A stretch of 64,000 bases of DNA, taken from assembly GCA_965240325.2 (NCBI GenBank), contig OZ251241.1:186001-250000 (forward strand). The letters are read 5' to 3'. The DNA is from Rebecca billardiae RCC1528 (lineage: Eukaryota > Protista > Haptophyta). The translations under genes and the position numbers were made by a program. The notes beneath the pieces are model-generated. The model was not told where the DNA came from, searched no databases, and saw only the letters and a list, made by a program, of their open reading frames with translations. Positions 29,829 to 54,652 of the stretch are shown here, piece by piece (position 1 is the first letter of the stretch; each line of letters begins with the position of its first letter).

Positions 29829-32800
29829 CTACGGTGTGCGCGCGGCGCTAGCTTTGCCGGCCGGAGTGCCCGCCGGCCGCACCTCCTGGGGCTGGGGGCG
29901 GCGTTGACTGCGGCCCGACGGCGACGCCGACGGCGACTGCGGGCCGCTGCCCTGCGGCGGCGGTGGTCGAGCGGGTGGCATGCCTGCGACCGGCCCTCCG
30001 CCGCCCACGCCGCCTACATGCGAACGCATACTACCGCCACCAATGGGCGTGCTGCCTGCGCCCGAGTAAGCCCTGTGCGGTATCCGGCGCGCGCGCACAG
30101 GGCGCCGCGGCGTGGACGGTGCGTGTGCCGTCAGCGGGCGATGCGCGGGGTCGCTGCCGGGAGCGGGGGCGGGGCGCACGAAGGCGCGAGGCTGCGCACG
30201 CGGGGGCGCACGCGCACGCGCCCGCAGGCGCACACACCTGCTCACGGTGGAGCGCGGAGTGCTCGCACTGATGCGAGAGGCACCCGAGTTGTAGCCTGCG
30301 CCGCCGCGCATGCTGCGGGGCACGGAGAGGGCGCGCGCGCACACGCGAGGTGCGCGAGTCAGGGCCATGCGCGGCGCGTGCAGCGCGCGCGCCCGCGCGC
30401 GCGGCGGCGCGCTGGCGCACGTGGCGCGGGGCACGGCCCAGGCGCACGCACCCGGCGCCTGCGGGCGAGGTCGCGCCGTAGATCGTGCGCCTGGGCGGCG
30501 TGCCGAGCGAGGGCATCGAGTAGATGTCGACCGCGCCCGGCTCGCGCGGCGGCTGCAGCCCGGCGCCGCCCGGCTCCGCGCCCTGCCCACGCGCGCCCAT
30601 CGACGGCGGCCGCCCTGCGGACGCGCAGCGACGTGCCGGCGAGGCGTCCTCCGCGCTGGCGCGCGTCGGCGTGACGGTGCCGGGCGCCGGGCCGCGCGGC
30701 GGCGGCCAGGGCTGCGACAGCGTGCGCGCGGGCAGCGTGCGCTGCGGCCGCGTGCGCTGCAGCTGCTCGCTGCCGCCCGCCAGCGCCCGCTCATGTCGCG
30801 CTCGCACCTCCTCGACCGAGGGCGGCGGCGGCGGCTGCCGCGCGCCCAAGAGCGCGAGGGGCTGCTCGCGCGAGGGCGAGGCGGGCGCAGCGCCGCCCGG
30901 CCGGCGCGCGGCCGCGCGCTCAGGCTGCTGCTGCGGCTGGCACTCGGGAACCACCGCGGCGAAGGTGCGAACGCCGGGCGCGACGGTCGCGGCCGGTGGC
31001 GGCGCCGCCTCGGGCGCGGGCGCCTCCGCTTCGGGCTCGACGCCTGTCTTGCGCGCGCGCCGCCTGGCGGCGGCGACGCAGCAGCAGCAGCAGATCAGCA
31101 GCAGTAGTAGTAGCGCGACGATGAAGCCAGGGCTGGACGCGTCCCCGTTCGCCCAGAAGGCTCGCTCCAGCCCGCCGAGCGGCGCTTCATTCTCGTCGAA
31201 GCTCGCCGCGGAAGAGAGCTCGCTCAAGTCGACGTCGCCGCCGTCGCTGCTGCTGCTGCCCGTGTCGCCCGCGCCGCCGGTGCCCGCGGGCAAGGGCGGC
31301 GTCGGCGGGCTGGGCGGTGGGCTGGGCGGCGGGCTGGGTGGCGGGCTGGGCGGTGGTGATGGCGGTGGCGATGGCGGCGGGCTGGGCGGCGGGCTGGGCG
31401 GCGGGCGCGGGCTGGGTGGCTCCTGCAGCGGCGGGGGCGACGGGCTCGGCGGCGGCGGCGGCGGCGGCGCGGGCGGCGGCGGGCTCTCGAGCGGCGTGCT
31501 GAGCAGCGGCGTGCTCGTCACCTGCACCACGGCCTCGAGTGCAGCCATTGACCCAAAGGTATTGCTCAGCGAGTCGACGTCGGAGGGCGCGCCGCCGGAG
31601 TCGGCCGCCGCCGCGACCGCGTCAGCAAACGCTCCCTGCAGCGCCGCGCTCACCTGCGCGACCGTGCCGAGCGCCGCCGCCAGCTCGGGCTCGGAGGCGA
31701 GCGCCCGGCGCGCGCCCGCGCGCCCGCTGTGCAGCAGCAGCTGCCGCCGGCCGCGCCTGCGCGCGCCCGCGCTCGCCGCCACCTCGGACAGCGCGCTCAC
31801 CGCGTCGGCCAGCGTGCGGAACGCGGGCGCGAGCACCGCCGGCAGCGCGGCGGACAGCGCGGCGGGCAGCGCGCGCGCCGCGCCGCCAAACAGCGACTCC
31901 GCCGCGTCGACCAGCTCAGACACCAGAGCCGCCGCGTCGGCGGTGCCGGAGACGGAGAACGGAGCGATGCCGCCGAGCGTGGGCACGGCGGGGTCGGTGG
32001 CGTTGGAGCCGCCGACCAGCGCGAGGTGCGAGCGTGCCCACTGCGCGTGCAGCGCGCGCGTCGCGTACGCGCGCGCGAGCGCGGCGTCGGCCGCGCCGCT
32101 CGCGTTCACAAACGCCGCGGCGATGACCGACGCCACAAACGCCGACTGCGCGCTGCTGAGCAGCAGCGGCGCCGCGAGCGCGACGTCCGGCGCGCCGCCC
32201 GTCGCCCAGAGCTGCGCGAGCGGGTCGTAGTCGAAGATGGACCACGGCACGGCGGCCGCGCCCGGCGGCGCCTCGGCCGGCGTCGAGCTGTCGGGCAGCG
32301 CAAACCACGCGCGCACGGCCGCCTCCGCGTCGGCGCGCGAGAGCGCCCCCTGCGCTTCGAGCGCGGCGGCGGCGGCGGCGCCCTGCGCGGTGCCCGCGCC
32401 CCACGAGGTGGGCAGCGGCGCGTCCGCCAGCTGCGCGACGAGCGTGCCGAGCGGCGAGGCGCTCAGCGCGCCGTCCGCCGAGAAGCGCACGGGCGCGTGC
32501 ACGCCCAGCGGCACGGCGAGGCCGGTGTAAGCGTCCACGCAGCCGGGCGCGCCCGCGGGGCGCGACGCGGCGTCCGTGGGCAGCAGCAGGAGCAGCGGCC
32601 GCGCCGCGCCGCCGCCCGCCGCGTCCGCCGCGGCCTCGCGCTCGAGCAGCTCGAGGGCGAAGGCGCCGGGCTCGAGGCCGAGCGCGGCGAGCGCGGCGCT
32701 CAGGTCGGCCACGCCCTCGCCGTCCGTGAGCGCGCTTGGCTCTGCCGCGCCCAGCACGCCGTCCCCGTCCACGTCCACGCCCAGCGTGCAGTTGGCCAGG

Positions 32801-35800
32801 TAGCCCGAGCCCAGCGCCACCACAGAGGTGGGGCCGAGGAAGGGCGGGGAGGGCGGGGAGGGCGGGGGGCTCGGCGCGCTCGGCGGCGAGGGCGGGACCG
32901 GCGGCGGCGGCGGCGGCGGCGGCGGTGAGGGCGGCGGGCTCGGCGGCGGGCTCGGCGGCGGCGGGCTCGGCCGCGGCAGCGGCGGCGGACTCGGCGGTGG
33001 ACTCGGTGGCGGTGATGGTGGAGGGCTCGGCGGTGACGATGGAGGCGGCGATGGCGGCGGGCTGGGTGGCGGTGGGCTCGGCGGTGGTGATGGAGGCGGG
33101 CTCGGCGGCGGCGACGGCGGCGGGCTCGGTGGCGGGCTCGGTGGCGGCGATGGCGGCGGGCTGGGCGGCAGCGACGGCGGCGGCAGCAACGGCGGCGGTG
33201 ACGGTGGTGGGCTCGGTGGCGGGCTCGGCGGTAGGCTTGGCGGTGGACTCGGAGGTGGCGAGGGTGGCGGGCTCGGCGGCGGGGATGGCGGTGGACTCGG
33301 TGGCGGCGAGGGCGGCGGACTCGGCGGCGGACTCGGTGGCGGCGGGCTCGGCGGCGGTGAAGGCGGCGGGCTCGGCGGTGGGCTCGGCGGCGGTGAGGGC
33401 GGTGGGCTGGGCGGCGGCGATGGTGGTGGTGACGGTGGCGGGCTCGGCGGCGGTGGGCTCGGTGGTGGTGATGGCGGTGGACTTGGCGGCGGCGAGGGCG
33501 GCGGGCTCGGCGGTGGCGATGGCGGTGGCGAGGGCGGTGGGCTCGGAGGCGGGGACGGCGGCGGAGGCGACGGCGGCGGCGATGGCGGTGGGCGTGGAGG
33601 TGGGCTTGGTGGCGGTGAGGGCGGCGGGCTGGGTGGCGGCGAGGGCGGTGGGCTCGGCGGCCGTGAAGGTGGTGGGCTCGGCGGCGGCGATGGTGGTGGG
33701 CTCGGCGGCGGGCTCGGTGGCGGTGGTGAGGGCGGCGGCGAAGGAGGCGGGCTGGGCGGCGGGCTCGGTGGTGGCGAGGGCGGTGGGCTTGGCGGTGGCG
33801 AGGGTGGTGGTGAGGGCGGCGGGCTTGGTGGCGGCGGGCTCGGTGGTGGGCTCGGTGGCGGTGATGGCGGTGGGCTCGGCGGCGGTGATGGCGGTGGGCT
33901 CGGCGGAGGGCTCGGCGGCGGGCTAGGCGGCGGAGTGGGCGGCGGGCTGGGCGGTGGCGAAGGTGGCGGGGACGGGGGCGGGCTGGGCGGTGGCGGCGAA
34001 GGTGGTGGACTTGGCGGTGGGCTCGGTGGAGGACTGGGCGGTGGCGAGGGCGGCGGATTCGGTGGCGACGAGGGCGGTGGCGAGGGCGGCGGGGAGGGCG
34101 GCGGGCTCGGCGGTGGCGAGGGCGGTGGAGAGGGCGGTGGGCTTGGCGGTGGCGGCGACGGCGGTGGCGATGGCGGCGGGCTTGGCGGCGGCGTAGGCGG
34201 CGGTGATGGCGGTGGTGATGGCGGCGGGCTGGGTGGCGGCGACGGTGGCGGCGAAGGCGGTGGGCTCGGAGGGGGAGAAGGGGGAGGGCTCGGCGGCGGG
34301 CTGGGTGGCGGCGGACTCGGCGGCGGCGACGGAGGTGGCAAGGGCGGCGGGCTTGGTGGCGGGTTTGGTGGCGGGCTGGGCGGCGGGCTGGGCGGCGGGC
34401 TGGGCGGCGGACTGGGCGGCGGCGGGCTGGGTGGCGGGCTCGGCGGCGGGCTGGGCGGCGGGCTCGGTGGCGGCGAGGGTGGCGGCGAGGGCGGCGGACT
34501 GGGCGGCAGTGAGGGCGGTGGCGACGGCGGTGGCAAAGGTGGCGGTGAGGGCGGAGGGCTCGGTGGAGGGCTCGGTGGAGGAGGGCTCGGTGGCGGGCTC
34601 GGCGGTGGTGATGGCGGCGGCGACGGCGGTGGCGACGGTGGCGGCGGGCTGGGAGGCGGCGAAGGCGGCGGGCTCGGTGGCGGCGAGGGCGGCGGGCGTG
34701 GTGGTGGGCTCGGCGGCGGCGACGGCGGCGGTGAAGGTGGAGGCGAGGGTGGCGGGCTCGGCGGTGGCGACGGCGGCGGAGATGGCGGCGGGCTGGGCGG
34801 CGGCGGCGACGGCGGCGGGCTTGGTGGCGGGCTTGGTGGCGGACTTGGTGGCGGGCTCGGCGGTGGCGACGGCGGTGGGCTTGGTGGTGGGCTCGGCGGT
34901 GGCGATGGTGGCGGCGGGCTCGGTGGCGGGCTAGGGGGCGGGCTCGGCGGCGGGCTTGGCGGTAGTGACGGCGGCGGTGGGCTTGGTGGCGGCGATGGCG
35001 GCGGGCTCGGCGGCGGCGATGGTGGCGGCGAGGGCGGTGGGCTCGGTGGCGGGCTCGGAGGTGGGCTCGGAGGTGGGCTTGGAGGCGGCGGGCTAGGCGG
35101 CGGGCTCGGCGGAGGCGATGGCGGCGGGCTTGGCGGAGGGTTTGGCGGTGGCGAGGGAGGCGGGGACGGTGGTGGGCTCGGCGGTGGGCTCGGTGGCGGC
35201 GGGCTTGGCGGCGGGCTCGGTGGAGGCGACGGTGGTGGGGTTGGAGGCGGGCTCGGTGGCGGCGAAGGAGGCGGGCTCGGCGGCGGCGATGGCGGCGGGC
35301 TCGGGGGTGGCGGGCTCGGCGGAGGCAAAGGTGGAAGCGACGGCGGCGGGCTTGGCGGCGGGCTTGGCGGCGGGCTCGGCGGCGGACGGGGCGGCGGGGA
35401 CGGCGGTGGCGACGGCGGTGGCGGGCTTGGCGGCGGGGACGGCGGTGGGTTCGGCGGCGGCGATGGTGGAGGGCTCGGTGGCGGCGAGGGAGGCGGGCTC
35501 GGCGGCGGCGATGGCGGCGGCGACGGCGGAGGCGGGCTCGGTGGCGGCGATGGAGGTGGGCTTGGCGGCGGCGACGGAGGCGGGCCTGGCGGCGGTGAGG
35601 GCGGTGGGCTTGGCGGCGGCGATGGAGGCGGGCTTGGCGGCGGCGACGGAGGCGGGCTTGGCGGCAGCGATGGAGGCGGGCTTGGCGGCGGCGACGGAGG
35701 CGGGCTTGGCGGCGGTGAGGGCGGTGGGCTCGGCGGAGGCGGGCTTGGCGGTGGGCGCGGCGGTGGGCTCGGTGGCGGCGAAGGCGGTGGTGATGGTGGC

Positions 35801-38800
35801 GGACTTGGCGGCGGATTGGGCGGTGGCGACGGCGGTGGGCTCGGAGGCGGGAACGGCGGTGGGCTGGGCGGCGGGCTCGGCGGCGGGCTCGGAGGTGGCG
35901 GGCTTGGCGGCGGGGATGGCGGCAGGCTGGGCGGCGGTGATGGTGGTGGACTGGGTGGTGGTGGGCTGGGTGGCGGGCTTGGAGGCGGGCTCGGCGGTGG
36001 GCTGGGAGGCGGCGAAGGGGGCGGGCTTGGCGGCGGGCTCGGCGGCGGTGAAGGAGGCGGGCTCGGCGGCGGGCTTGGCGGCGGGCTCGGCGGCGGGCTC
36101 GGCGGCGGGCTGGGTGGCGGCGGGCTGGGGGGCGGCGAGGGCGGTGGCGAGGGCGGCGGCGAGGGCGGCGAGCTGGGCGGCGGGCTCGGCGGCGGGCTTG
36201 GCGGCGGCGATGGTGGCGGCGATGGCGGTGGCGGGGAGGGCGGCGGGCTTGGCGGCGGGCTTGGCGGCGGGCTTGGCGGCGGGCTCGGAGGTGGGCTCGG
36301 TGGTGGTGACGGCGGAGGGCTCGGCGGCGGCAAGGGCGGCGGAGGCGACGGCGGTGGGCTCGGTGGCGGGCTTGGCGGGGGGCTGGGTGGAGGGCTGGGT
36401 GGTGACGACGGCGGTGGCGACGGTGGCGGGCTCGGAGGTGGGCTCGGCGGCGGTGGGCTCGGTGGCGGGCTTGGCGGTGGGTTCGGTGGTGGCGATGGCG
36501 GCGGGCTTGGCGGCGGGCTTGGCGGTGGAGACGGCGGTGGACTTGGTGGCGGCGAGGGCGGTGGCGGCGACGGCGGCGGACTAGGCGGTGGGCTTGGCGG
36601 TGGCAAGGGCGGTGGGCTCGGCGGTGGAGACGGCGGCGGGCTGGGCGGCGGGCTGGGCGGCGGAGATGGCGGCGGTGGGCTTGGCGGCGGGGATGGCGGC
36701 GGGCTCGGCGGCGGGCTTGGTGGCGGCAAAGGCGGTGGGCTCGGCGGCGGAGACGGCGGCGGGCTCGGAGGAGGGCTCGGCGGCGGGGATGGTGGCGGCG
36801 GGCTCGGCGGTGGAGATGGCGGCGGGCTCGGCGGCGGGCTTGGTGGCGGGCTGGGCGGAGGGCTGGGCGGTGGGCTCGGTGGTGGCGACGGGGGTGGAGA
36901 CGGTGGCGGCGGGCTCGGCGGCGGCGAAGGTGGCGGGCTCGGCGGCGGCGATGGTGGTGGGCTCGGCGGTGGCAACGGCGGCGGGCTTGGAGGCGGCGAT
37001 GGTGGTGGGCTTGGCGGTGGCGATGGTGGCGGGCTCGGCGGCGGCGACGGCGGCGGGCTCGGCGGTGGCGGGCTTGGCGGTGGCGAGGGAGGCGGCGATG
37101 GCGGTGGCGAGGGCGGAGGGCTCGGCGGTGGCGAGGGCGGTGGGCTGGGCGGAGGCGATGGCGGCGGGCTCGGCGGTGGCGGCGAGGGCGGTGGCGAGGG
37201 CGGCGGCGAGGGCGGTGGCGACGGCGGTGGGCTGGGCGGTGGGCTCGGCGGCGGCGATGGCGGCGGGCTTGGCGGCGGGCTCGGCGGTGGAGACGGCGGT
37301 GGACTTGGAGGCGGCGAGGGCGGTGGCGGTGACGGCGGCGGGCTCGGCGGCGGGCTTGGTGGTGGCAACGGCGGTGGGCTCGGTGGCGGAGACGGCGGCG
37401 GGCTCGGCGGCGGGCTCGGCGGCGGGGCTGGTGGCGGCGGGCTCGGCGGTGGAGACGGCGGTGGGCTCGGCGGCGGGCTTGGTGGCGGGCTGGGCGGAGG
37501 GCTGGGCGGTGGGCTCGGTGGTGGCGACGGGGGTGGCGACGGTGGCGGCGGGCTCGGCGGCGGCGAAGGCGGCGGGCTCGGCGGCGGCGATGGTGGTGGG
37601 CTCGGCGGTGGCAACGGCGGCGGGCTTGGAGGCGGCGATGGTGGTGGGCTTGGCGGTGGCGATGGTGGCGGGCTCGGCGGCGGCGACGGCGGCGGGCTCG
37701 GTGGTGGCGGGCTTGGCGGTGGCGATGGCGGCGGCGATGGCGGTGGCGAGGGCGGAGGGCTTGGCGGTGGCGACGGCGGTGGGCTGGGCGGAGGCGATGG
37801 CGGCGGGCTCGGCGGGGGCGGCGAGGGCGGTGGCGAGGGCGGCGGCGAGGGCGGTGGCGAGGGCGGTGGGCTGGGCGGTGGGCTCGGTGGCGGTGAGGGC
37901 GGTGGACTGGGCGGTGGGCTTGGCGGTGGCGGGCTGGGCGGTGGCGATGGCGGTGGGCTTGGCGGCGGCGACGGCGGTGGGCTCGGCGGCGGAGGTGATG
38001 GCGGTGGCGATGGTGGTGGCGATGGTGGCGGCGAGGGTGGCGGGCTCGGAGGCGGGCTTGGCGGTGGGCGTGGCGGCGGGCTTGGCGGCGGGCTTGGTGG
38101 CGGCGGTGACGGCGGTGGCGACGGTGGCGGACTCGGCGGCGGCGCGGGGGGCGGGCTAGGCGGCGGAGAGGGCGGCGGGCTCGGCGGTGGCGAGGGCGGC
38201 GGGCTGGGTGGCGGTGGGCTGGGCGGCGGCGAGGGCGGTGGCGAGGGCGGCGGCGAGGGCGGCGGGCTGGGGGGCGGGCTTGGAGGCGGGCTCGGCGGTG
38301 GCGATGGCGGTGGCGACGGTGGTGGAGGCGATGGTGGTGGCGACGGTGGCGGCGATGGCGGCGGCGACGGCGGCGGGCTTGGAGGCGGTGACGGTGGGGG
38401 ACTGGGCGGCGGAGACGGCGGTGGGCTGGGCGGCGGAGAGGGCGGTGGGCTGGGCGGCGGCGACGGTGGTGGCGATGGAGGCGGGGGGCTCGGCGGTGGC
38501 GATGGTGGCGGACTGGGTGGCGGGGATGGCGGCGGGCTCGGCGGCGGCGACGGAGGCGGGCTCGGCGGCGGCGACGGAGGCGGGCTTGGCGGAGGTGGGC
38601 TCGGCGGTGGGAACGGTGGAGGGCTCGGCGGCGGCGATGGCGGCGGGCTCGGTGGCGGCGGTGATGGCGGCGGTGATGGCGGCGGCGATGGCGGCGGCGA
38701 CGGCGGTGGGCTGGGCGGTGGGCTCGGCGGCGGCGATGGCGGCGGGCTTGGCGGCGGGCTCGGCGGTGGAGACGGCGGTGGACTTGGAGGCGGCGAGGGC

Positions 38801-41800
38801 GGTGGCGGTGACGGCGGCGGGCTCGGCGGCGGGCTGGGTGGTGGCAACGGCGGTGGGCTCGGTGGCGGAGACGGCGGCGGGCTCGGCGGCGGGCTCGGCG
38901 GCGGGGATGGTGGCGGCGGGCTCGGCGGTGGAGACGGCGGTGGGCTCGGCGGCGGGCTTGGTGGCGGGCTGGGCGGAGGGCTGGGCGGTGGGCTCGGTGG
39001 TGGCGATGGGGGTGGCGACGGTGGCGGCGGGCTCGGCGGCGGCGACGGCGGCGGGCTCGGCGGTGGCGACGGCGGTGGGCTCGGCGGTGGCGATGGTGGT
39101 GGGCTCGGCGGCGGCGACGGCGGCGGGCTTGGCGGTGGCGATGGTGGCGGGCTTGGCGGTGGCGACGGCGGCGGGCTCGGTGGTGGCGGGCTTGGCGGTG
39201 GCGAGGGCGGCGGCGAGGGCGGTGGCGAGGGCGGAGGGCTTGGCGGTGGCGAGGGCGGTGGGCTGGGCGGAGGTGATGGCGGCGGGCTCGGCGGGGGCGG
39301 CGAGGGCGGGGGCGAGGGCGGCGGCGAGGGCGGAGGCGAGGGCGGTGGGCTGGGCGGTGGGCTCGGCGGCGGTGAGGGCGGTGGACTGGGCGGTGGGCTC
39401 GGCGGTGGCGGGCTGGGCGGTGGCGATGGCGGTGGGCTTGGCGGCGGCGACGGCGGTGGGCTCGGCGGCGGAGGTGATGGCGGTGGCAATGGCGGCGGCG
39501 ATGGCGGCGGCAAGGGTGGCGGGCTCGGAGGCGGGCTTGGCGGTGGGCGTGGCGGTGGGCTTGGCGGCGGGCTTGGTGGCGGCGGTGACGGCGGTGGCGA
39601 AGGTGGCGGACTCGGCGGCGGCGCGGGGGGCGGGCTCGGCGGCGGAGAGGGCGGCGGGCTCGGCGGTGGCGAGGGCGGCGGGCTGGGTGGCGGTGGGCTG
39701 GGCGGTGGCGAGGGCGGTGGCGAGGGCGGCGGCGAGGGCGGCGGGCTTGGGGGCGGGCTTGGAGGCGGGCTCGGCGGTGGCGATGGCGGTGGCGACGGTG
39801 GTGGAGGCGATGGTGGTGGCGACGGTGGCGGCGATGGCGGCGGCGACGGCGGCGGGCTTGGAGGCGGTGACGGTGGGGGGCTGGGCGGCGGAGACGGCGG
39901 CGGGCTGGGCGGCGGGGAGGGCGGTGGGCTGGGCGGCGGCGACGGTGGTGGCGATGGCGGCGGGGGGCTCGGCGGGGGCGATGGGGGCGGGCTGGGTGGC
40001 GGGGATGGCGGCGGGCTCGGTGGCGGCGACGGTGGCGGGCTCGGCGGCGGCGACGGCGGCGGGCTCGGTGGTGGCGGGCTTGGCGGTGGCGAGGGCGGCG
40101 GCGATGGCGGTGGCGAGGGCGGAGGGCTTGGCGGGGGCGACGGCGGTGGGCTGGGCGGAGGCGATGGCGGCGGGCTCGGCGGAGGCGGCGAGGGCGGTGG
40201 CGAGGGCGGCGGCGAGGGCGGTGGCGAGGGCGGTGGGCTGGGCGGTGGGCTCGGCGGCGGTGAGGGCGGTGGACTGGGCGGTGGGCTCGGCGGTGGCGGG
40301 CTGGGCGGTGGCGATGGCGGTGGGCTTGGCGGCGGCGACGGCGGTGGGCTCGGCGGAGGAGGTGATGGCGGTGGCGATGGCGGTGGCGATGGCGGCGGCG
40401 AGGGTGGCGGGCTCGGAGGCGGGCTTGGCGGTGGGCGTGGCGGCGGGCTTGGCGGCGGGCGTGGTGGCGGCGGTGACGGCGGTGGCGACGGTGGTGGACT
40501 CGGTGGCGGCGCGGGGGGCGGGCTAGGCGGCGGAGAGGGCGGCGGGCTCGGCGGTGGCGAGGGCGGCGGGCTGGGTGGCGGTGGGCTGGGCGGTGGCGAG
40601 GGCGGTGGCGAGGGCGGCGGCGAGGGCGGCGGGCTGGGGGGTGGGCTTGGAGGCGGGCTCGGCGGTGGCGATGGCGGTGGCGACGGTGGTGGAGGCGATG
40701 GTGGTGGCGACGGTGGCGGCGATGGCGGCGGCGACGGCGGCGGGCTTGGAGGCGGTGACGGTGGAGGGCTGGGCGGCGGCGACGGCGGCGGGCTGGGCGG
40801 CCGGGAGGGCGGTGGGCTGGGCGGCGGCGACGGGGGTGGCGACGGCGGCGGCGGGCTAGGCGGTGGTGATGGTGGCGGGCTCGGCGGGGGCGACGGCGGC
40901 GGGCTCGGCGGCGGCGATGGTGGCGGGCTCGGCGGCGGCGACGGAGGCGGGCTCGGCGGCGGTGGGCTCGGCGGTGGGGACGGTGGAGGGCTCGGCGGCG
41001 GCGACGGCGGCGGGCTTGGCGGCGGCGATGGCGGGGGGCTTGGCGGCGGCGAGGGCGGTGGGCTTGGCGGCGGCGGCGAGGGTGGCGGTGATGGCGGCGG
41101 CGATGGTGGTGGCGACGGCGGCGGGCTCGGCGGCGGGCTCGGCGGTGGAGTTGGTGGTGGGCTTGGTGGCGGGCTCGGAGGTGGCGGGCTCGGCGGCGGC
41201 GAGGGTGGCGGGCTCGGCGGCGGCGAGGGCGGTGGGCTCGGTGGAGGGGGAGAAGGCGGTGGGAGTGGTGGTGGCGAGGGCGGAGGCGAGGGCGGCGGGC
41301 TTGGTGGCGGGCTCGGCGGCGGACTTGGCGGCGGGCTTGGTGGTGGGCTCGGCGGCGGTGGGCTCGGCGGCGGCGAGGGTGGCGGGCTCGGCGGCGGCGA
41401 GGGCGGTGGGCTCGGCGGCGGTGGGCTCGGGGGCGGCGACGGCGGAGGGCTCGGCGGCGGCGAGGGAGGTGGGCTCGGTGGTGGCGATGGCGGCGGGCTT
41501 GGCGGCGGCGAGGGAGGTGGGCTCGGTGGTGGCGATGGCGGCGGGCTTGGCGGCGGCGAGGGCGGCGGGCTCGGTGGCGGCGGCGAGGGTGGCGGTGATG
41601 GCGGCGGCGATGGTGGTGGCGACGGCGGCGGGCTGGGCGGCGGGCTCGGCGGTGGAGTTGGTGGTGGGCTTGGTGGCGGGCTCGGAGGTGGCGGGCTCGG
41701 CGGCGGCGAGGGTGGCGGGCTCGGCGGCGGCGAGGGCGGTGGGCTCGGTGGAGGGGGGGAAGGCGGTGGGAGTGGTGGTGGCGAGGGCGGAGGCGAGGGC

Positions 41801-44800: not shown

Positions 44801-47658
44801 GGCGGTGGCGACGGTGGCGGCGGGCTTGGGGGCGGCGAGGGTGGTGGGCTCGGGGGTGGCGACGGCGGCGGCGACGGTGGTGGCGACGGCGGCGGGCTGG
44901 GCGGTGGGGACGGCGGCGGCGGGCTGGGCGGCGGAGAAGGCGGTGGCGATGGTGGTGGGCTTGGGGGCGGCGTGGGCGGTGGGGGGCTCGGCGGTGGACT
45001 CGGCGGCGGGCTTGGTGGCTGCGTCGGCGGTGGGGCCGGCGGCGGCGGGCTCGGCGGTGGCGAGGGTGGCGGTGATGGCGGCGGTGAGGGCGGCGGAGAA
45101 GGCGGGTGGCTGGGCGGCGGGCTGGGCGGCGGGCTGGGCGGCGGGCTCGGCGGTGGCGAGGGCGGCGACGAGGGCGGCGGCGGCGAGGGCGGTGGTGAGG
45201 GCGGCGGGTTGGGCGGCGGCAGCGGCGGCGGTGAGGGCGGCGGGCTGGGCGGCAGGCTGGGTGGTGGCGAGGGTGGCGGCGAGGGTGGCGGCGAGGGCGG
45301 CGGGCTCGGCGGCGGCAGCGGCGGCGGCGGCGAGCGCGCGGTGCCTTGCAGGTCGATCAAGCTGAGCGCCTGCGTGTACACGGCGCTCACCTCCGCGGCG
45401 GTCAGCACGCCCGTGTACACGCCCACGTCGTCGATCGCCCCCGAGAACTGGTCGCTGCTCGAGGCGACGGACGTGCACAGCTTGAGCGCGCTCGCCCCCG
45501 TGCTGAGCGCCGCGCCGAGCGCGCGCGTGCCGTACTTGCCGCCGTGCGCCGCGCCGCCGTCGACGGCGAAGGAGAGCGTGGTCACGCCGTCGTACGTGAC
45601 GGCGGCGTGTATCCACACGCCCGCGCTGCGCCCGTCCTCCCCCGAGCCCTCCGTCGCGCCGCAGTGCGTGTTCGCGATCCCGCCCGCCCACACGCACAGC
45701 CCGGCGCTCGTCGACACCAACACGTCAAATTGACCGTTGGTCACGCCCGGACTGCCCCACGAGACGACGGAGTCGGCGCCGCTGCCGCCCGCGCGCTTGA
45801 ACCACACCATCACCGAGCGCGCCACGGAGCCGCCGAGGGTACTCGCCGCGACCGCACCGTCGCCCGTCGCCGAGTCCGCCGAGCCGCACTGCAGCGCAGA
45901 GCCAATCCGCCCCTCGGCCGGGCTGCTCTGCGACGCGCCCGCGCTGAGCGTGAGGCCGATGGCGGCGGGGCCGAGGTCGAGGCCGGGCGTGCCGGACGCG
46001 TCGAAGGCGTAGTGGTGCTGCAGGCCCGCCGCGACGGGCGGCGGTGGGCTCGGCGGCGGCGGCGGCGGCGCGGGCGGCGGGCTGGGTGGCGGAGCGGGCG
46101 GCGGCGGGCTCGGCGGCGGCGAGGGCGGCGGGCTCGGCGGCGGGCTCGGCGGCGGGCTCGGCGGCGGCAGCGGCGGCGGCGGGCTCGGCGGCGGGCTCGG
46201 CGGCGGCAGCGGCGGCGGCGGCGACAGCGCCGCCCCGGTCAGATCGAGCCCGCCCGCCGCGTTGCTCACGATCGTCGCCAGCTGCGCCGCGGTGAGCACC
46301 CCGTAGAAAATACCCACGTCGTCCAGCTCGCCTCGGAAGAAGTCCGGTAGGAATCCGGCGGTGGGGCCTCCGACCGAGAGCACCGTGCTCGCGCCGTTGC
46401 CCGTGTTGAGCGCGCGCGCCTGGCTCACGCTCAGCGCGCCGTCCCGGTAGATCCGCACGTCCGAGCCGTCGTACGTCACGGCGACGTGCAGCCACACAGA
46501 GGCGCCCACCGCGCCCGCCTGCGTGCCCGCGCCGAGGAACCCAAAGTGCGCCACGAGCACGTCGCTGCTCAGCCCGAGCTCGAAGGCCTGCGCTGAGGCG
46601 GCCGAGCCATACGAGAGCGCGGCGGGCTGCTCGCCCGTCCCCGTCGCGTTGAGCCGCAGCCACAGCGCCACCGAGCGCGCCGCCGCGCCCGAGATCGTGT
46701 CGGTAAGGCCGGCAGGCGCGCTCAGCCGTGTGGAGCCGTCCAGCTGCAGCGCGCGCCCGACGCGGCCGTCGTCGGCGTACGCGACGGTGCCCGAGGCGAG
46801 GGTGAGCCCGCCGAGCTGCCCGTTCAGGCTGTACTGCGCGAGCAGCGCCGCGGCGGGCGCCGCCGACGAGTCGCCGTTCGCCGAGACCTCCGCCAGCCCG
46901 GCGGCGTACAGCGCGGCCGCCTGCGACGAGTTGAGCGCGGCCGCGTAGAGCGCCGCGTCGTCGAGCAGCCCGCCCCAGCTCTGCGTGGTGATCAGCCCGA
47001 CGCAGAGCTTGAGGTACACGGCCTCGGTCGCGAGCGTCGCCGCCGACGAGCTCGCCGACAGCGCGCCGTCGACGTACAGCGCCGTGGTGGTGGTGGGCGC
47101 GTCGTAGCTGAGCGCGACGTGCTGCCAGCTGCTGCCGTCGTAGCTGAGCGTGCTGGCCGGCGTGGAGAGCAGCGCGCCGCTGGCGAAGTTGGCCAGCACG
47201 TCGAGCGAGCCGTCTGTCAGCGCGCGCAGCTCGAGGTACACCTCGCCAAAGTTGAAGCCCGGGCCGACGGCCGCGACGCCGCGCGTCTGCGCGGGCGCGC
47301 TCGAGGGCGGGCGCAGCCACAGCGCGAGCGTCTTGGACGAGCCGCCGTTGAAGGCGGGCACGGCGTCACTCGAGCCGTCGCCCAGCGTGAGCGCGAGGCT
47401 CCCGCCGCAGTCCACGGCCTCGCCAATCTGCCCGCTCGTGTACGGCACGGGCTCCGCGCTCGCGCTGAGCGCGTCGGCCTGCGTAACGGCTGAGCTGAGG
47501 CCCTCGTCCAGCTGGTACAGGTGGACGAGCGGCTCGGAGACGGGCGCGCCGGCGTGGACGGGCACGCGCGTCGCGCACAGCGCGAGCACGACGAGCGCCC
47601 GGAAGGCGCGGCGCCGCGGCGCGGGCCGTCTGCCCGCGCACGGCGCGGCGGTGGGCAT
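29829..47658 (-). CDS. Giant type-I membrane surface glycoprotein: signal peptide, 3x LamG/ConA-like lectin domains, ~4,100-aa (SPPP)n stalk, bacterial-type beta-domain, TM + poly-Cys, cytoplasmic tail; 3' introns 30313-30451 and 30073-30237
   Basis: Uninterrupted ORF from ATG 47658. Three repeats of W.HVAVTYDG...F.G.LDD.G.Y...LT (~46900-47530, 46250-46840, 45350-46020), SPPP at 32935-45330, GYLANCTLGVDVDGDG..EPSALTD..G and FIVALLLLLLICCCCC. Two GT-AG introns lead to a stop at 29829 (or 29848 if one C is missing near 29915). Confidence 0.88.
32935..45330 (-). repeat. 12.4-kb coding minisatellite (12-bp unit encoding Ser-Pro-Pro-Pro) with internal higher-order duplications
   Basis: The + strand reads GGC-GGC-GGG-CTC variants continuously. 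Diagnostic variant blocks recur (e.g. near 38140, 39620, 40510; and 41147, 41655). Confidence 0.97.
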
Positions 47659-47910: not shown

Positions 47911-47970
47911 TATATATATATATATATATACATCGGCGACGATATCAACATATGCTATATATATATACAC
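47911..47970. repeat. (TA)n island between the two surface-protein genes
   Basis: TA runs downstream of the gene ending at 48100. Confidence 0.9.
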
Positions 47971-48099
47971 ACAGTGATGCGGCGGCTGCGATGTACGTCC
48001 TGGCGGCGAGGCCAGGCTGCCAGTAGTCGTAGACTATGAGTGCGCGCGCGCCCTGCGACGCGCCGCGTCTCCATCGAGTACGGTCGCGTGTGCGCGGCG

Positions 48100-49624
48100 C
48101 TAGCTTTGATGCCGGCCGTAGTACCCACCGGCCGCGCCTCCTGGGGCCGGGGGCGGCGTTGACTGCGGCGGCGGCGGGCGAGCGGGTGGCATGCCTGCGG
48201 CCGGCCCTCCGCCGACGCCGCCTCCCTGCGGACGCACACCGCCACCAGCGGGCGTGCTGCCTGCGCCCGAGTAAGCCCTGCGCGGTATCCGGCACGCGCG
48301 CACAGGGCGCCGCGGCGTGGACGGTGCGTGTGCCGTCAGCGGGCGATGCGCGGGAGGCGCTACCGGGAGCGGGGGCGGGGCGCACGAAGGCGCGAGGCTG
48401 CGCACGCGGGGGCGCACGCGCACGCGCCCGCAGGCGCACACACCTGCTCACGGTGGAGCGCGGAGCGCTCGCGCCGATGCGAGAGGCGCCCGAGTTGTAG
48501 CCTGCGCCGCCGCGCATGCTGCGGGGCGGAGGGCGCGCGCGCATGACGCATTCGGGGCGCGCGAGTCAGGGCCCCGCGCGGCGCGCGCGGCGCGCGGCGC
48601 GGCGCACGCACCCGGCGCCTGCGGACGAGGTCGCGCCGTCGATCGTGCGCCTGGGCCGTGCGCCGAGCGAAGGAGTCGAGTAGATGTTGACCGCGCCCGG
48701 CTCGCGCGGCGGCCGCAGCCCGGCGCCGCCTGGCTCCGCGCCCTGCCCACGCGCGCCCATCGACGGCGGCCGCCCTGCGGACGCGCAGCGACGTGCCGGC
48801 GAGGCGTCCTCCGCGCCAGCGCGCGTCGGCGTGACGGTGCCGGGCGCCGGGCCGCGCGGCGGCGGCCATGGCGCGGTGCTGTATGGCTGCTGCAGCGGCA
48901 GCGGCGCGGGCTGCTCCGGCGGCGCCGCCGGCGCCGGGCGGAGCTGCTGCGCGGCCGGTGGCGGCGGCAGCGGCTGCAGCGGCTGCTGCGGCGGCGGCGT
49001 GCCGGCCGCGCGGGTGCTGAGCGGCGCGCTCGGCAGCGGCGTCGCGCCGCGCACCGGCGGCAGCACGGGCAGCTGCGGGCCGAGCGCGCCCGAGCCGCCG
49101 GCCCCCGACCGTTGCGACAGCGTGCGCGCGGGCAGCGTGCGCTGCGGCCGCTCCGCGCCGCCCGCCAGCGCTCGCTCCTGCGCGCGCACCTCCTCGACCG
49201 AGGGCGGCGGCGGCGGCTGCTGCGCGCCGACGAGCGCGGGCAGCTGCTCGCGCGAGGGCGAGGCGGGCGCGGCGCCGCCCGGCCGGCGCGCGGCCGCCCG
49301 CTCCGGCTGCTGCTGCATCTGGTACTCACGAACCGCGGAGGCGAACTTGCGGGCGCCGGGCGCGGCGCTCGCGGGCGGTGGCGGCGCCGCCTCGGGCGCG
49401 GGCTCCTCCTCCGCCTCGGGCTCGACGCCGGTCGTGCCCGCGCGCCGCCTGCGCGCGAGCAGCACCACGGCGGCGGCGACGCAGCAGCAGCAGCAGATCA
49501 GCAGCAGCAGTGTGACGATGAAGCCAGGGCTGGACGCGTCCCCGTTCGCCCAGAAGGCTCGCTCCAGCGCGCCGAGCAAAGTGTCGTTCTCGTCGAAGCT
49601 CGCCTCGGAGGCGAGGGTGCTCGA

Positions 49625-49659
<35 letters not shown>

Positions 49660-49799
49660 TGCTGCCCGTGTCGCCCGTGCCGCCCGTGCCGCCCGTGCCC
49701 GCGGGCGAGGGCGGCGTCGGCGGGCTCGGCGGCGGGCTGGGCGGCGGGCTGGGCGGCGGCATCGGCGGGCTGGGCGGCGCCTGCGGCGGCGCCGGCGGC

Positions 49800-49834
<35 letters not shown>

Positions 49835-52800
49835 CGAGGGCGGCGGGCTGGGCGGCGGGCGCGGGCTGGGTGGCTCCTGCAGCGGCGGGGGCGACGGGCT
49901 CGGCGGCGGCGGAAGCGACGGCAGCGGCGGCGCGGGCGGGCTCGGCGGCGAGGGCGGGCTCGGCGGCGACGGCGGCGGCGGCGCGGGCGGCGGCGGGCTC
50001 TCGAGCGGCGTGCTGAGCGGCGGCGTGCTCGTCGCCTGCACGACGGCGTCGAGCGCCGCCATCGACCCGAACGTATTGCTCAGCGAGTCGACGTCGGAGG
50101 GCGCGCCGCCGGAGTCGGCCGCCGCCGCGATCGCGTCGGCGAGCGCTCCCTGCAGCGCCGCGCTCACCTGCGCGACCGTGCCGAGCGCCGCCGCCAGCTC
50201 GGGCTCGGAGGCGAGCGCCCGGCGCGCGCCCGCGCGCCCGCTGTGCAGCAGCAGCTGCCGCCGGCCGCGCCTGCGCGCGCCCGCGCTCGCCGCCACCTCG
50301 GACAGCGCGCTCACCGCGTCGGCCAGCGTGCGGAACGCGGGCGCGAGCACCGCCGGCAGCGCGTCAGACAGCGCGGCGGGCAGCGCGCGCGCCGCGTCGC
50401 CAAACAGCGACTCCGCCGCGTCGACCAGCTCAGACACTAGAGCCGCCGCGTCGGCAGTGCCGGAGACGGAGAACGGAGCGATGCCGCCGAGCGTGGGCAC
50501 GGCGGGGTCGGTGGCGTTGGAGCCGCCGACCAGCGCGAGGTGCGAGCGCGCCCACTGCGCGTGCAGCGCGCGCGTCGCGTACGCGCGTGCGAGCGCGGCG
50601 TCGGCCGCGCCGCTCGCGTTCACAAACGCCGCGGCGATGACCGACGCCACAAACGCCGACTGCGCGCTGCTGAGCAGCAGCGGCGCCGCGAGCGCGACGT
50701 CCGGCGCGCCGCCCGTCGCCCAGAGCTGCGCGAGCGGGTCGTAGTCGAAGACGGACCACGGCACGGCGGCCGCGCCCGGCGGCGCCTCGGCCGGCGTCGA
50801 GCTGTCGGGCAGCGCAAACCACGCGCGCACGGCCGCCTCCGCGTCGGCGCGCAAGAGCGCCCCCTGCGCTTCGAGCGCGGCGGCGGCGGCGGCGCCCTGC
50901 GCGGTGCCCGCGCCCCACGAGGTGGGCAGCGGCGTGCCCGCCAGCTGCGCGACGAGCGTGCCGAGCGGCGAGGCGCTCAGCGCGCCGTCCGCCGAGAAGC
51001 GCACGGGCGCGTGCACGCCCAGCGGCACGGCGAGGCCGGTGTAAGCGTCCACGCAGCCGGGCGCGCCCGCGGGGCGCGACGCGGCGTCCGCGGGCAGCAG
51101 CAGGAGCAGCGGGCGCGCCGCGCCGCCGCCCGCCGCGTCCGCCGCGGCCTCGCGCTCGAGCAGCTCGAGGGCGAAGGCGCCGGGCTCGAGGCCGAGCGCG
51201 GCGAGCGCGGCGCTCAGGTCGGCCACGCCCTCGCCGTCCGTGAGCGCGCTTGGCTCTGCCGCGCCCAGCGCGCCGTCCCCATCCACGTCCACGCCCAGCG
51301 TGCAGTTGGCCAGGTAGCCCGAGCCCAGCGCCACCACAGAGGTGGGGCCGAGGAAGGGCGGGGAGGGCGGGGAGGGCGGGGGGCTCGGCGCGCTCGGCGG
51401 CGAGGGCGGGACCGGCGGCGGCGGCGGCGGCGGCGGCGGTGAGGGCGGCGACGCCGGCGAGGGCGGCGGCGGGCTCGGCGGCGGCGGGTGCGGGCTCGGC
51501 GGCGGCGGGCTGGGCGGCGGGCTCGGTGGCGAGGCCGGCGGCGGCGGCGCGGCCGGCGGCGGCGGCGAGGGCGGCGGTGGCGAGGGCGAGGGCGGCGGCG
51601 GGAAGGGCGGCGGGCGCGGCAGCCGCGGCGGCGGCGGCGGCGAGGGCGGCGGGCTCGGCGTCGGCGGCGGCGGCGAGGGCGGCGGCGCGGGCGGGCTCGG
51701 CGGCGGGAACGGCTCGGTGCGCGGCGGCGGCGGCGGCGCGGGCGGCGGCGAGGGCGGCGGCGGCGCGGAGGGCGGCGAGGGCGGCGGCGGCGTCGGCGGC
51801 GGCGCGGGCGGAGGGCTCGGCGGCGGCTTGGGCGGCGACGCCGGCGGCGCCGCGGGCGGCTTGGGCGCGATCGGCGGCGACGGCGGCGGCGGCGGGCTGC
51901 GGAAGCGCGGCGGCGACGGCGGCGGCGGACTCGCCGGCGGCGGGCTCGGCGGCGGGCTCGGCGGCGCGCCCGGCGGCGGCAGCGTCGGCGGCGGGCTGTT
52001 CTCTGGGAAGGCGTCGGGGAGTGGCGGCGGGCTCGGCGGCGGCGGTAGGCTCGGCGGGGGGAACGGCGGCGAGGGCGGGCTGGGCGGCGGCAGCGGCGGC
52101 GGCGGGCTGGGTGGCGGCGGCGGCGCGAACGGCGGCAGCGAGGGCGGCGGGCTCTTGGGCGGCGACGGCGGCTGCGCGGGCGGGCTGGGCGGCGAGGGCG
52201 AGCACAGCCCGCACGACAGCTCGCACTGCTGCGCCACAAACTCGTGGCTCACGCACCGCTCGAGGCGGCTGGCGCAGAATGTGGCGCCGCCGAGGTCGTA
52301 GCAGCCGGGCGGCGGCGCGGGCGGCACCGGCGGCGGCGCGGGCGGCGCGGGCGGCGGGCGCGACGGCGGCGGGGGCGAGGGCGGGCTCGGCGGGATCCGA
52401 AGCGGGTCGGGCGGCAGCGGAGGGTTGGGCGGGGTGGGCGGCGGCGGCGGCATGCTCGGCGGGAGCGGGGGCGAGGGCGGCGGCGGCGGCGGCGGGCGCG
52501 GCGGCGGCGGGCTCGGCGGCGGCGGGCGCGGCGGCAGCGGCGGCGGGCTCGGGCAGATCCCGCACGACACCTTGCACTGCTCCGCCACCTCCGCCGACGC
52601 CTCGCACTGCGCCAGCCGCGACTCACACCACACCGCGCCCGCGAGGTCGTAGCAGCCGGGCGGCGGCGTGGGCGGCGTGGGCGGCGGCGGCAGCGAGGGC
52701 GGGATGGGCGGCGGGAGCGGCGGCGGCGACGAGGGCACCGGCGGCGTGGGCGGCGGCAGCGGAGGCGACGGCGGCGGCGGCTGCGACGGCGCCGCCGGCG

Positions 52801-53054
52801 GCGAGTTGGGAGGCGGCGGCGACGGCGGGCGCGACGGCGGCAGCGACGGCGGGAGCGGCGGTGTGCGCTCGCCCGCCGGGCTGGGCGGCGGGCTGGGCGG
52901 CGCGGGCGGGCTGGGCGGCGTGGGCGGCGGGCTCGGGCACAGCCCGCACGAGACGCGGCACAGCGTCTGCACCTGCGCGCTCGAGCCGCACAGGTGCAGC
53001 CGGTTGTTGCAGTACACCGCGCTGCCCAGGTCGTAGCAGCCGGGCGGCGGCGAG

Positions 53055-53124
<70 letters not shown>

Positions 53125-54652
53125 AGGGCTCGGGCGGCAGCGCGGGCGGCGGTGGCGGCAGGTTGGGCGGCGTCGGCGGCGAGGGCGGCGAGGGCGGCGG
53201 CGCGGGCGGCGGCGAGGGCGGCGGCGCGGGCGGCGGGCTGGGCGGCGGCGGGCTGGGCGGCGGCGACGGCGGTGGCGGCGGCGGGCTGGGCGGCGGCGGG
53301 CTGGGCGGCGGCGCGGGCGGCGGGCTCGGCGGCGGCGGGCTCGGCGGCGGCGCGGGCGGCGGGCTCGGCGGCGGCGGGCTGGGTGGCGGCGTGGGTGGCG
53401 GCGAGGGCGGGCTCGGCGGCGGCGGGCTCGGCGGCGGCGAGGGCGGCGGCAAGGGCGGCGGCGGGCTGGGCGGCGGCGAGGGCGGCGGCGAGGGCGGCGG
53501 CGGGCTCGGCGGCGGGCTGGGCGGCGGCGAGGGCGGCGGCGGGCTGGGCGGCGGGCTGGGCGGCTGCCCGGGGGGCGGCGGTGGGCTCGGCGGCTCGGGC
53601 GGCGGGCTGGGCGGCGGCGAGGGCGGTGGGCTGGGTGGCGGCGAGGGCGGGGGGCTGGGCGGCGGCGGGCTCGGCGGCGGCGAGGGTGGCGGCGGGCTGG
53701 GCGGCGGGCTGGGCGGTGGCGAGGGAGGTGGCGGGCTCGGCGGCGGGCTAGGTGGCGGGGCCGGCGGCGGCGGCAGCGACGGGGGCGGCGGGCTGGGTGG
53801 CGGCGGCGACGGCGACGGCGGCGGCGGGCTCGGCGGCAGCGGCGGGCTGGGCGGCGGGCTCGGCGGCTGCGGCGGCGGGCTGGGCGGGCTGGGCGGCAGC
53901 GGCGGCGGCGGCGGTGGGCTCGGCGGGCTGGGCGGCGACGGCGGGCTCGGCGGCGGGCTGGGCGGGCGCGGCGGCGGGCTCGGCGGGCTCGGCGGGCTCG
54001 GCGGCGCCGGCGGCGGCGCCGGCACCACCTGCAGCGCTCGGCGCGCCGCCGCGCTCGCCTCGCCATGCTCCGTCCCGATCGGCCGCCCGAGCGCTGCGTG
54101 ATCAGTCGGCACCTCCGCGCGTGCGTACGAGAGCGCGCCCGAGGCGTCGGCGCAGACCGCCTCGAAGGCGGGCGGCGGCGCGGCACGGGACGGCGCGCCG
54201 TCGTCGGCGGGCGCCCACTCGAAGCGCACCGGCGAGCTCGTCCACTCGCCGCGCACGCAGCGCGCGCCGTCGGCAGCGGCCGCGGCCGCGGTGCTTCCGC
54301 CGGCCGGCGCGGGCGCGTGCGCGAGCAGACCGGCGGAGGCGTCGGCCCGGACGAGGTAGAGCACGTGCCCCGCCGGAACTTCGGCGAGCACGTGCGCCCC
54401 TCGGCCGTCGCTCGCGACGCGCAGCGCGCACGCGCGCGCCTCTGCGGGCGGCGGCGGCGCAAACCGCTGCGCGGCCGCCACGGCTGCGCGCAGGTCGGGT
54501 GTGGCGCACAGGGCGTCGGGCGGCCCTGGGCGCGCGTGTGCGGCGGCGAGCGCGCAGCTCGCCACCATGCACGCGCCGAGCAGCGCGCGCGCGCGCGCCC
54601 GGCCGGCTGGCCGGGGCGTAACGTGCGCCCGGTGCGCGCTCAGGCCGACCAT
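48100..54652 (-). CDS. Paralogous proline-rich type-I membrane protein: signal peptide, N-terminal domain, SPPP stalk with 3x ShK-toxin-like domains, same C-terminal cassette; introns 48519-48611 and 48278-48443
   Basis: ATG at 54652. GCYDLG..(Y/W/F)C..RL..C......C..SCG.C occurs three times (~52935-53040, 52555-52655, 52200-52305). C-terminal ~3 kb is nearly identical to 29850-32935, including introns. Ends GGYYGRHQS* at 48100. Confidence 0.85.

Follow-up and report, generated by a model that had tools for sequence, protein, structure and literature searches.

The DNA considered here is a 64,000-nt stretch (the window) of the very GC-rich genome of the haptophyte Rebecca billardiae RCC1528 (contig OZ251241.1, positions 186,001 to 250,000), and its subject is a tandem pair of adjacent minus-strand genes, A and B, which are predicted to encode type-I membrane proteins with unrelated heads, proline-rich rods and a common membrane anchor. 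All genome searches covered the 72-Mb, 41-contig assembly (G000) in which the window is G000:C24:186001-250000; the pair is located 216-241 kb into the 1.50-Mb contig C24. Two giant minus-strand open reading frames, 30031-47658 (A) and 48566-54835 (B), contain most of the coding sequence. The GC content is 60-87% per 2-kb interval, and a strong G-skew of the plus strand at 32 to 45 kb fits minus-strand genes built mostly of proline codons. Exons were translated one by one, and the gene models are predictions from DNA. The features of gene A are as follows.

29829-47658, minus strand: gene A, a predicted type-I membrane protein of ~5,841 aa (open reading frame, translation, splice-site and phase analysis).
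47658-30452, 30312-30238 and 30072-29829, minus strand: exons of gene A, the last including the TAG stop (splice and phase analysis).
47551-47658, minus strand: signal-peptide-like segment, a basic stretch and then a hydrophobic run (read from the translation).
45385-47550, minus strand: head with three Laminin_G_3 (ConA-like lectin) domains, LamG1 to LamG3 (Pfam PF13385).
45964-46266, minus strand: 101-aa SPPP linker between LamG2 and LamG3 (proline-rich scan).
32785-45369, minus strand: stalk, or rod, of 4,195 aa (proline-rich scan).
32842-32960, minus strand: junction, formed by the final ~120 nt of the stalk; identity to B (51356-51468) rises here from 64% to 95%.
31492-32841, minus strand: C-domain of the shared cassette, 450 aa, 97.9% identical to B 50006-51355.
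31231-31527, minus strand: SPPP linker 2, 99 aa (proline-rich scan, A/B alignment).
31066-31125, minus strand: transmembrane helix with a CCCCC cluster, an acidic/Ser-rich patch before it and a basic stop-transfer stretch after it (translation).
30313-30451, minus strand: putative intron 1, 139 nt, GTGCGT..CAG, holding a 47-nt indel relative to B that is not a multiple of three.
30073-30237, minus strand: putative intron 2, 165 nt, GTGTGT..CAG, 97.6% identical to that of B.

The predicted start of gene A is the ATG at 47658, from which one frame is open over 5,875 codons containing no N. Its head matches Laminin_G_3 with E=2.6e-30 (106 bits, two stretches) and 5.1e-13 (49.9 bits) at a cut-off of 27.6. 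In composition the stalk is 74.5% Pro and 22.5% Ser; it contains 801 SPPP and 108 SPPPP units, and thus shows the Ser-Pro(3-5) repeats by which extensin-like or chimeric extensin members of the hydroxyproline-rich glycoproteins (HRGPs) are recognized. On the other hand, with 2 Tyr and 0 Lys in 4,195 residues it does not carry the tyrosine cross-link motifs (YXY, VYK) of classical extensins, so that the protein is not a classical cross-linking extensin. The underlying DNA is a minisatellite of ~1,000 copies of a 12-nt unit with higher-order periods of 99 and 111 nt; the array is degenerate, with a 66% match between adjacent units, and mixes the four proline codons (CCG 57%, CCA 27%, CCC 11% and CCT 6% over 32785-45369). 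The rod makes up 70% of the gene and lies together with the head and the anchor in a single 17.2-kb exon. A polyproline-II helix rises by 0.31 nm per residue; fully extended in this conformation, the rod would measure ~1.3 micrometres.

Gene B is composed of the following parts.

48100-54652, minus strand: gene B, a predicted type-I membrane protein of ~2,097 aa (open reading frame, translation, splice and phase analysis).
54652-48612, 48518-48444 and 48277-48100, minus strand: exons of gene B, with the stop at 48102-48100 (splice and phase analysis).
53966-54652, minus strand: head, in which a signal-peptide-like start precedes an unnamed module of ~190 aa that contains Cys and is beta-rich (translation, searches).
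53038-52937, 52654-52553 and 52303-52202, minus strand: three ShK-like six-Cys domains (Pfam PF01549 and Cys-pattern match).
50006-51355, minus strand: C-domain of the cassette, 450 aa, protein 97% identical to that of A.
49454-49522, minus strand: transmembrane helix with a CCCCC cluster (translation).
48611-48519, minus strand: putative intron 1, 93 nt, GTGCGT..CAG, position and phase as in A.
48518-48444, minus strand: exon 2 (splice and phase analysis).
48443-48278, minus strand: putative intron 2, 166 nt, GTGTGT..CAG, position and phase as in A.

The start of gene B is the ATG at 54652, and the N-terminus, as read from the translation, again has a basic and then a hydrophobic stretch. The head module matched no Pfam family even at E<=10, has no paralog elsewhere in its own genome (where it is unique) and gave no atlas match; its single-sequence AlphaFold2 model (mean predicted local distance difference test score, pLDDT, 52) was too poor for a structure search. 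A Reeler-like resemblance had been suspected by eye, and nothing supports it. The ShK assignment is based on a PF01549 score of 40.9 bits (cut-off 20.9) and on three units, separated by proline-rich linkers, that fit the pattern C-x-D...C...C...C...C..C. A census of the genome found at least 56 ShK domains, mostly in frames of 400-700 aa, and was uninformative. Proline-rich sequence in B totals ~900 residues in four blocks (360+118+116+308), and the genome search found no close partner for the 5' half of the gene. The two genes thus agree with an initial annotation made from the letters of the window, which had described unrelated heads (three LamG versus an unknown domain plus three ShK-like units) on SPPP stalks of very different length (4,195 residues in A against the four blocks in B), and had placed the gene ends at 29829 (stop) and 54652 (ATG), as do the splice and phase models.

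Downstream of these dissimilar heads and rods, both proteins have the same order of modules, namely the 450-aa C-domain, a short SPPP linker, an acidic/Ser-rich patch, the CCCCC-containing transmembrane helix and a proline-rich tail. The common cassette spans ~3.1 kb and includes two GT-AG introns. A global alignment of the A and B DNA gave the following identities.

Stalk upstream of the junction: 64%.
Final 120 nt of the stalk (A 32960-32842): 94.7%.
C-domain: 97.9%, gapless; 98.9% for A 32936 to 31630 (1.3 kb).
SPPP linker 2: 88.9%, with 117 gap columns.
Acidic patch, transmembrane helix and first part of the tail: 88.1%.
Second part of the tail: 92.6%.
Intron 1: 78.3%, with a 47-nt indel.
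Exon 2: 94.7%; 22 of 24 residues the same.
Intron 2: 97.6%.
Exon 3: 89.7%; one indel of 44 nt.
Downstream of A 29829: 48%.

The onset of homology is abrupt (64% upstream of A 32960 / B 51468 and 95-98% from there on), inside the last ~120 nt of the stalk, which is where the initial annotation had set the beginning of identity. Its further statement that the C-terminal ~3 kb are almost base-identical, both introns included, holds only for the C-domain; apart from intron 2 (97.6%), the rest of the cassette is 78-95% identical with many indels, intron 1 among it at only 78%. From the stalk junction to A 30713 all A/B indels are multiples of three, including an insertion of 207 nt in the tail of B, and indels of other lengths (47, 1, 1 and 44 nt) occur only downstream of A 30713. 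The existence of two 3' introns in both copies is plausible, given their GT..AG ends, the equal phase and the confinement of frame-breaking indels of this region to the introns; the 44-nt indel in exon 3 shifts the frame of B, so that A and B end at different stops. The insertion itself (B 49118-48912) is in frame, Pro/Gln-rich and absent from A (at 30734), and its site is flanked by the short direct repeat RTLPARTLSQ.

Rates of change differ along the cassette. For the C-domain the proportion of synonymous differences between A and B (pS) is 0.038, that of nonsynonymous differences (pN) 0.014 and pN/pS 0.36, at a GC content of third codon positions of 95%. A simple account would be that part of a gene was duplicated in tandem and the copies then diverged in the ordinary way, with purifying selection and no conversion or exchange keeping the C-domains nearly identical. 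The adjacency of A and B on one strand, the pN/pS of 0.36 and the expectation that a disordered tail and linkers evolve faster all speak for it. Nevertheless, we hold it unlikely, since protein-level constraint alone would not produce this combination of low pS and a near-identical intron: synonymous sites of the C-domain differ by only 0.038 while adjoining coding parts differ by 7-12%, and the non-coding intron 2 is 97.6% identical as against 78% for intron 1. The low synonymous divergence and the near-identical intron 2 point instead to recent copying, that is, gene conversion over an older partial duplication. The cassette would accordingly be made up of an older ~3.1-kb homologous layer, a far closer tract over the C-domain and a second tract around intron 2, a structure read from the alignment.

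A second relationship, with an unlinked locus, bears on the same question and has no explanation in a local duplication. A search with the first 500 residues of A retrieved relatives on contigs C17 (77%, in an 8,174-aa frame), C15 (45%), C12 and C7 (both 41%), all in giant open frames, and the nearest of them shares a long tract at the DNA level.

43187-46968 of gene A, minus strand: exchange tract 1, which matches G000:C17:1524885-1528666 over 3,782 nt without gaps, with 94.8% identity.

Within this tract LamG2-LamG3 are 97.9% identical overall (95-99% along the diagonal; pS 0.050, pN 0.009) and the first 2.1 kb of the rod 92.6% overall (83-97% along the diagonal). On the same diagonal LamG1 reaches an identity of only 50-73%, and the 5' flanks are unrelated. 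Colinearity ends inside the rod at ~43250, where identity falls to the 75-83% background of any two arrays. The proximal rod has a pS of 0.17 and no indel over 2.1 kb, which indicates that its synonymous change is fast and its length stable. For the remainder of the A stalk a third partner was sought, and only background matches of 73-75% appeared, a weak negative because the scoring covered very few candidates. The base of the C17 gene is of another kind (~30 copies of a 36-38-aa Cys repeat, an SEA-like segment, a transmembrane helix and a tail), the C15 gene carries the same Cys repeats, and the LamG-rod genes of C12 and C7 end in a MAM domain (E=1.2e-24), so that one kind of head occurs on at least three kinds of base. 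Gene A itself appears to combine a C17-type head segment with a B-type anchor, both relationships being apparently recent and of similar age.

The same 98% likeness to part of the C17 gene could also be taken as a sign that two rod genes were mis-joined by the assembler inside an SPPP array, the LamG head of A and the B-like anchor residing in reality on separate molecules; an array of 12.4 kb of low-complexity sequence, in a genome with more than 1,300 similar ones, would be a suitable place for such an error. We give this explanation only a slim chance. The array is degenerate, with 66% identity between neighbouring units and all four proline codons mixed, a single frame without N remains open through 5,875 codons, and 41 contigs for 72 Mb lead us to infer that the assembly is of long-read origin. 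Moreover, the A-specific LamG1 and the A-specific variant of the anchor are distinct sequences, and each must therefore exist somewhere in the genome.

Starting from the observed anatomy, mosaic of identities, copy numbers and different bases on related heads, we regard it as probable, though well short of certain, that A and B are chimeric-extensin-like surface proteins whose shared anchor arose by duplication and conversion, and that modules have been exchanged among rod genes by ectopic recombination or conversion. They would be type-I membrane glycoproteins of the cell surface in which a Ser-Pro3-4 rod keeps a folded head (lectin-like LamG in A; ShK-type Cys knots and the unnamed module in B) at a distance from the cell. 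By analogy with plant and green-algal Ser-Pro3-4 proteins (PMC4769139, PMC10762512), the rod is presumably hydroxylated and glycosylated. The 450-aa juxtamembrane C-domain, the acidic patch, the Cys-rich transmembrane helix and the proline-rich cytoplasmic tail would anchor this rod. In the proposed history, a local partial duplication first created the shared anchor (the older layer, 88-93% identical) and gene conversion later re-homogenised the C-domain (98-99% identical, pS ~0.04). Gene A would also have exchanged LamG2-LamG3 and 2.1 kb of rod (93-98%) with the unlinked C17 gene, whose base differs, through ectopic homologous recombination or gene conversion; the likely direction and order of these exchanges are our reconstruction. 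Given the near-absence of Tyr from the rod, which argues against cross-linking of the extensin type, a free-standing filament seems more likely than a wall network.

As to the joints, intron-mediated shuffling is excluded for those of A because head, rod and anchor share one 17.2-kb exon. Both junctions that change the architecture lie in SPPP-coding DNA (there the A/C17 likeness ends and the A/B likeness starts), and such DNA is dispersed over the genome in 1,300-1,500 first-look candidate arrays. Joints that are both in frame and structurally tolerated would be available only in the 12-nt SPPP repeat, its unit being a multiple of three, and homologous pairing between 12-nt arrays would keep the reading frame. 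In our reading, SPPP homology would actively favour such joints and not just permit them. The idea of the initial annotation that the SPPP minisatellite is a joint shuffling heads onto a constant anchor is thus borne out in that heads and anchors have re-assorted with the switch in SPPP DNA, the C17 head standing on a different anchor; a causal part of the repeat would be a further step.

Several points weigh against this account. Only two of the five tract edges fall in SPPP DNA: the 98.9% C-domain tract stops ~100 nt short of linker 2, the A/C17 tract starts where LamG1 meets LamG2, and the A/B homology ends near the stop codon. With the rod constituting 70% of gene A, and joints in folded domains selected against, the position of the joint is as expected and does not prove a mechanistic role for the repeat. 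Part of the higher identity of the C-domain could reflect constraint. Finally, the joining of head to anchor in gene A across the 12.4-kb array is that of the assembly, and both genes are taken here as predictions, made from DNA alone.

How far the anchor has served as a common base can be judged from its copy number. A search of the genome with the cassette DNA returned the two copies in the window as the only close ones, along with more than 570 further matches of its short SPPP linker to dispersed arrays at 75-83% identity. At the protein level, the C-domain was searched against all six frames of the genome and matched at five places, the two window copies (100% and 97%) and three on C16 and C1 at 33-35%. 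All three distant paralogs consist of a signal peptide, a short proline-rich or low-complexity N-terminus, the C-domain, a proline-rich segment, the acidic patch, a transmembrane helix and a tail; globular heads and long rods are absent from all three. The anchor is accordingly a small, old family in which, to judge by these five loci, heads are found only in the tandem pair.

These counts bear directly on the possibility that A and B belong to a dedicated, actively diversifying display family in which many heads are swapped onto one anchor via the SPPP minisatellite, in the manner of flocculins and other adhesins. Two unrelated heads on one cassette with the junction in the stalk, the mosaic of gene A and the abundance of SPPP arrays as possible substrates are what such a system would produce. 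We nonetheless consider it highly improbable, since 72 Mb contain just two close cassettes by either DNA or protein search, the three other members are 31-35% identical and headless, the head of B is unique and its 5' half without a close partner, and a divergence of 1-5% fits evolutionary events rather than frequent switching. The anchor is a transmembrane helix with a cytoplasmic tail of ~300 aa, not the glycosylphosphatidylinositol (GPI) or cell-wall anchor of a flocculin-type family, and the position of the pair within its contig does not suggest a location at a chromosome end. The variable surface-display family on a constant anchor that the initial annotation had suggested is therefore not upheld, and its flocculin-like ongoing switching finds nothing to show for it; the genome-wide catalogue of heads on the cassette produced no variants beyond A and B, close to the two-copies-only outcome which that annotation itself had named as contrary to its proposal.

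The C-domain belongs to no Pfam family. The alignment of the five paralogs contains invariant motifs (GY..C.LG.D.DGDG, C.D.YTGL, DPL..LW, QW, RR.L and V..A.QG). A word-index protein search retrieved only P0001, which is identical to one of the paralogs, P4 (L004:151-1497, G000:C1), and so belongs to the same species. When a profile built from the five domains was searched against 1.84 billion representatives, it yielded P0001, P0002 (E=6.8e-26), one bacterial SdrD-like protein and nothing else; the bacterial match was rejected, its agreement being limited to the DxDGDG motif. P0002 derives from a read-archive assembly (Logan SRR30664515) of a less GC-rich organism and can be regarded as the ortholog of P4, because both have a WW-type tail and the same WD40 neighbour. 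The headless, WW-tailed form looks ancestral, judging by the presence of this ortholog in another organism. In P4 the tail contains a WW domain (one Pfam hit) and a second similar motif recognized by eye. The WD40 gene lies upstream of P0002 (L033:4272-6923), as it does at P4, and a gene for a P4H-type 2OG-Fe(II) oxygenase is located nearby on the P0002 contig.

An AlphaFold2 model of the C-domain built from six sequences was of middling quality (pLDDT 59, predicted template-modelling score 0.56) and has a small beta module (residues 6-117) to which a bundle of long helices is joined; the invariant RR.L site sits in a low-confidence, poorly ordered loop. Foldseek found no match to this model in the PDB at E<=0.001. 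In the ESM Atlas the best template-modelling score was 0.56, to an unnamed eukaryotic cluster, with scores of ~0.48 to bacterial hypothetical proteins carrying TSP_3 or Big_9 calcium-binding modules, and a feature search returned unnamed clusters only. With low confidence, we would suggest a calcium-stabilised juxtamembrane module, possibly cleavable at its basic site. A 267-aa non-repeat segment inside the Cys-repeat array of C15 (L035, G000:C15:927439-928239, minus strand) has the motifs C.D..(S/T)G..AP..PL and GGRRRRL, as in the C-domain; its status as a relative was not established (hhalign probability 3%, E=0.015).

The closest known counterparts in architecture are the chimeric extensins and other HRGPs of green algae (Volvocine GP1, pherophorins, sexual agglutinins), which likewise combine Ser-Pro3-4 rods with globular domains on secreted or surface proteins; sexual agglutinins are fibrils with a head and a shaft. 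In contrast to them, A has a far longer rod (4,195 residues), a type-I transmembrane anchor with an unnamed juxtamembrane domain and no tyrosine cross-link motifs, and the host here is probably non-green; the likeness drawn here is one of architecture. According to a passage in PMC10762512 (citing PMC4769139), green algae have 'long chimeric extensins' that are absent from land plants. The chimeric extensins of plants (LRX, PERK and class I formins) resemble A and B in the fusion of an extensin-like Ser-Pro stretch to a recognition or signalling module. PERKs and class I formins also have a transmembrane helix. In A and B, however, the heads are LamG or ShK, the rod exceeds theirs in length by one to two orders of magnitude, and Pfam detects no kinase, LRR or FH2 domain in the tail; a PERK-type kinase in particular was looked for in the 396-aa region after the transmembrane helix, which matched no Pfam family, and exons 2 and 3 are short and of low complexity.

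Other comparisons concern the mode of exchange and the stalk. Yeast adhesins (FLO, EPA) are also surface-protein genes with long coding tandem repeats reshuffled by conversion or unequal exchange, and repeat-mediated conversion and reshuffling have been described for adhesin genes of yeasts (PMC2566889, on the megasatellites of Candida glabrata). Yeast adhesins, however, form families of many copies in which the ligand-binding head is conserved and a GPI or wall anchor is used, whereas here the anchor is shared and only two close copies exist, and the repeat unit is 12 nt against 100-400 nt in the yeast satellites. Animal exon shuffling has led to the same outcome, surface proteins that contain LamG, MAM, ShK and SEA-like modules in varying order; within a single 17.2-kb exon, by contrast, phase-compatible introns cannot be the joints, and in-frame coding repeats would take their place. 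Stalked receptors such as mucins with SEA domains, or polycystin-1 and adhesion G-protein-coupled receptors with GAIN/GPS domains, are similar in having a folded domain between a long glycosylated stalk and a transmembrane helix, but neither Pfam, Foldseek nor the Atlas revealed any sequence or fold similarity of the C-domain to these, and its cleavage is speculative. A literature search on haptophyte HRGPs and on HRGP domain shuffling gave nothing describing such genes. Overall, there is good evidence for module exchange and none for a dedicated diversity system, and what is new here is an anchor domain that has no name, a transmembrane protein with a rod of extreme length, a host that is probably not green and a mosaic of three linked and unlinked rod genes that can still be read and shows recent exchange.

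The locus thus offers a concrete and datable case of domain shuffling inside one exon, with a low-complexity coding repeat and not an intron as the joint, and it defines a juxtamembrane domain family that appears to be confined to this lineage. It also predicts micrometre-scale, lectin-tipped surface filaments on a poorly studied alga, which could serve adhesion, sensing across a scale or mucilage layer, or cell-cell recognition. A warning follows for automated annotation, which will truncate or mis-join such genes in genomes of this type. A more general proposition, which we advance only tentatively and think rather doubtful, is that the SPPP minisatellite acts throughout this genome as an in-frame recombination linker, in the role that introns have in animal exon shuffling. 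Ectopic exchange among hundreds of arrays would then combine heads (LamG, ShK, LRR, RCC1 and others) with bases (the new C-domain, Cys-repeat/SEA-like, MAM and polycystin-like) on micrometre-long rods, A, B and the C17 gene being a recent, legible example.

Some further observations were made on the other LamG-rod genes. The Cys repeat of the C17 and C15 genes (GCTDS.A.NY....A..DDGSC) follows SPPP rods at G000:C17:1505078-1510300 (L025/L026, minus strand) and G000:C15:925030-932000 (L027/L028), in arrays of ~30 to more than 60 copies of a 36-38-aa unit; no Pfam family matched it save for a partial and probably spurious hit to PsaN (24.8 bits). The C12 and C7 genes (L029, G000:C12:2423633-2427997, and L030, G000:C7:2468321-2473360) have the order LamG (four to five copies), SPPP (384) and MAM, and their proteins are nearly identical, so that they represent either a very recent duplication or retained haplotigs; haplotigs, if present, would affect all copy-number statements for this assembly. 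On C15, a second LamG-bearing giant frame of 6,172 aa (G000:C15:937027-939349, plus strand) stands head-to-head with the LamG-rod gene at 925030-936165 (minus strand), an arrangement that suggests another local cluster of rod genes.

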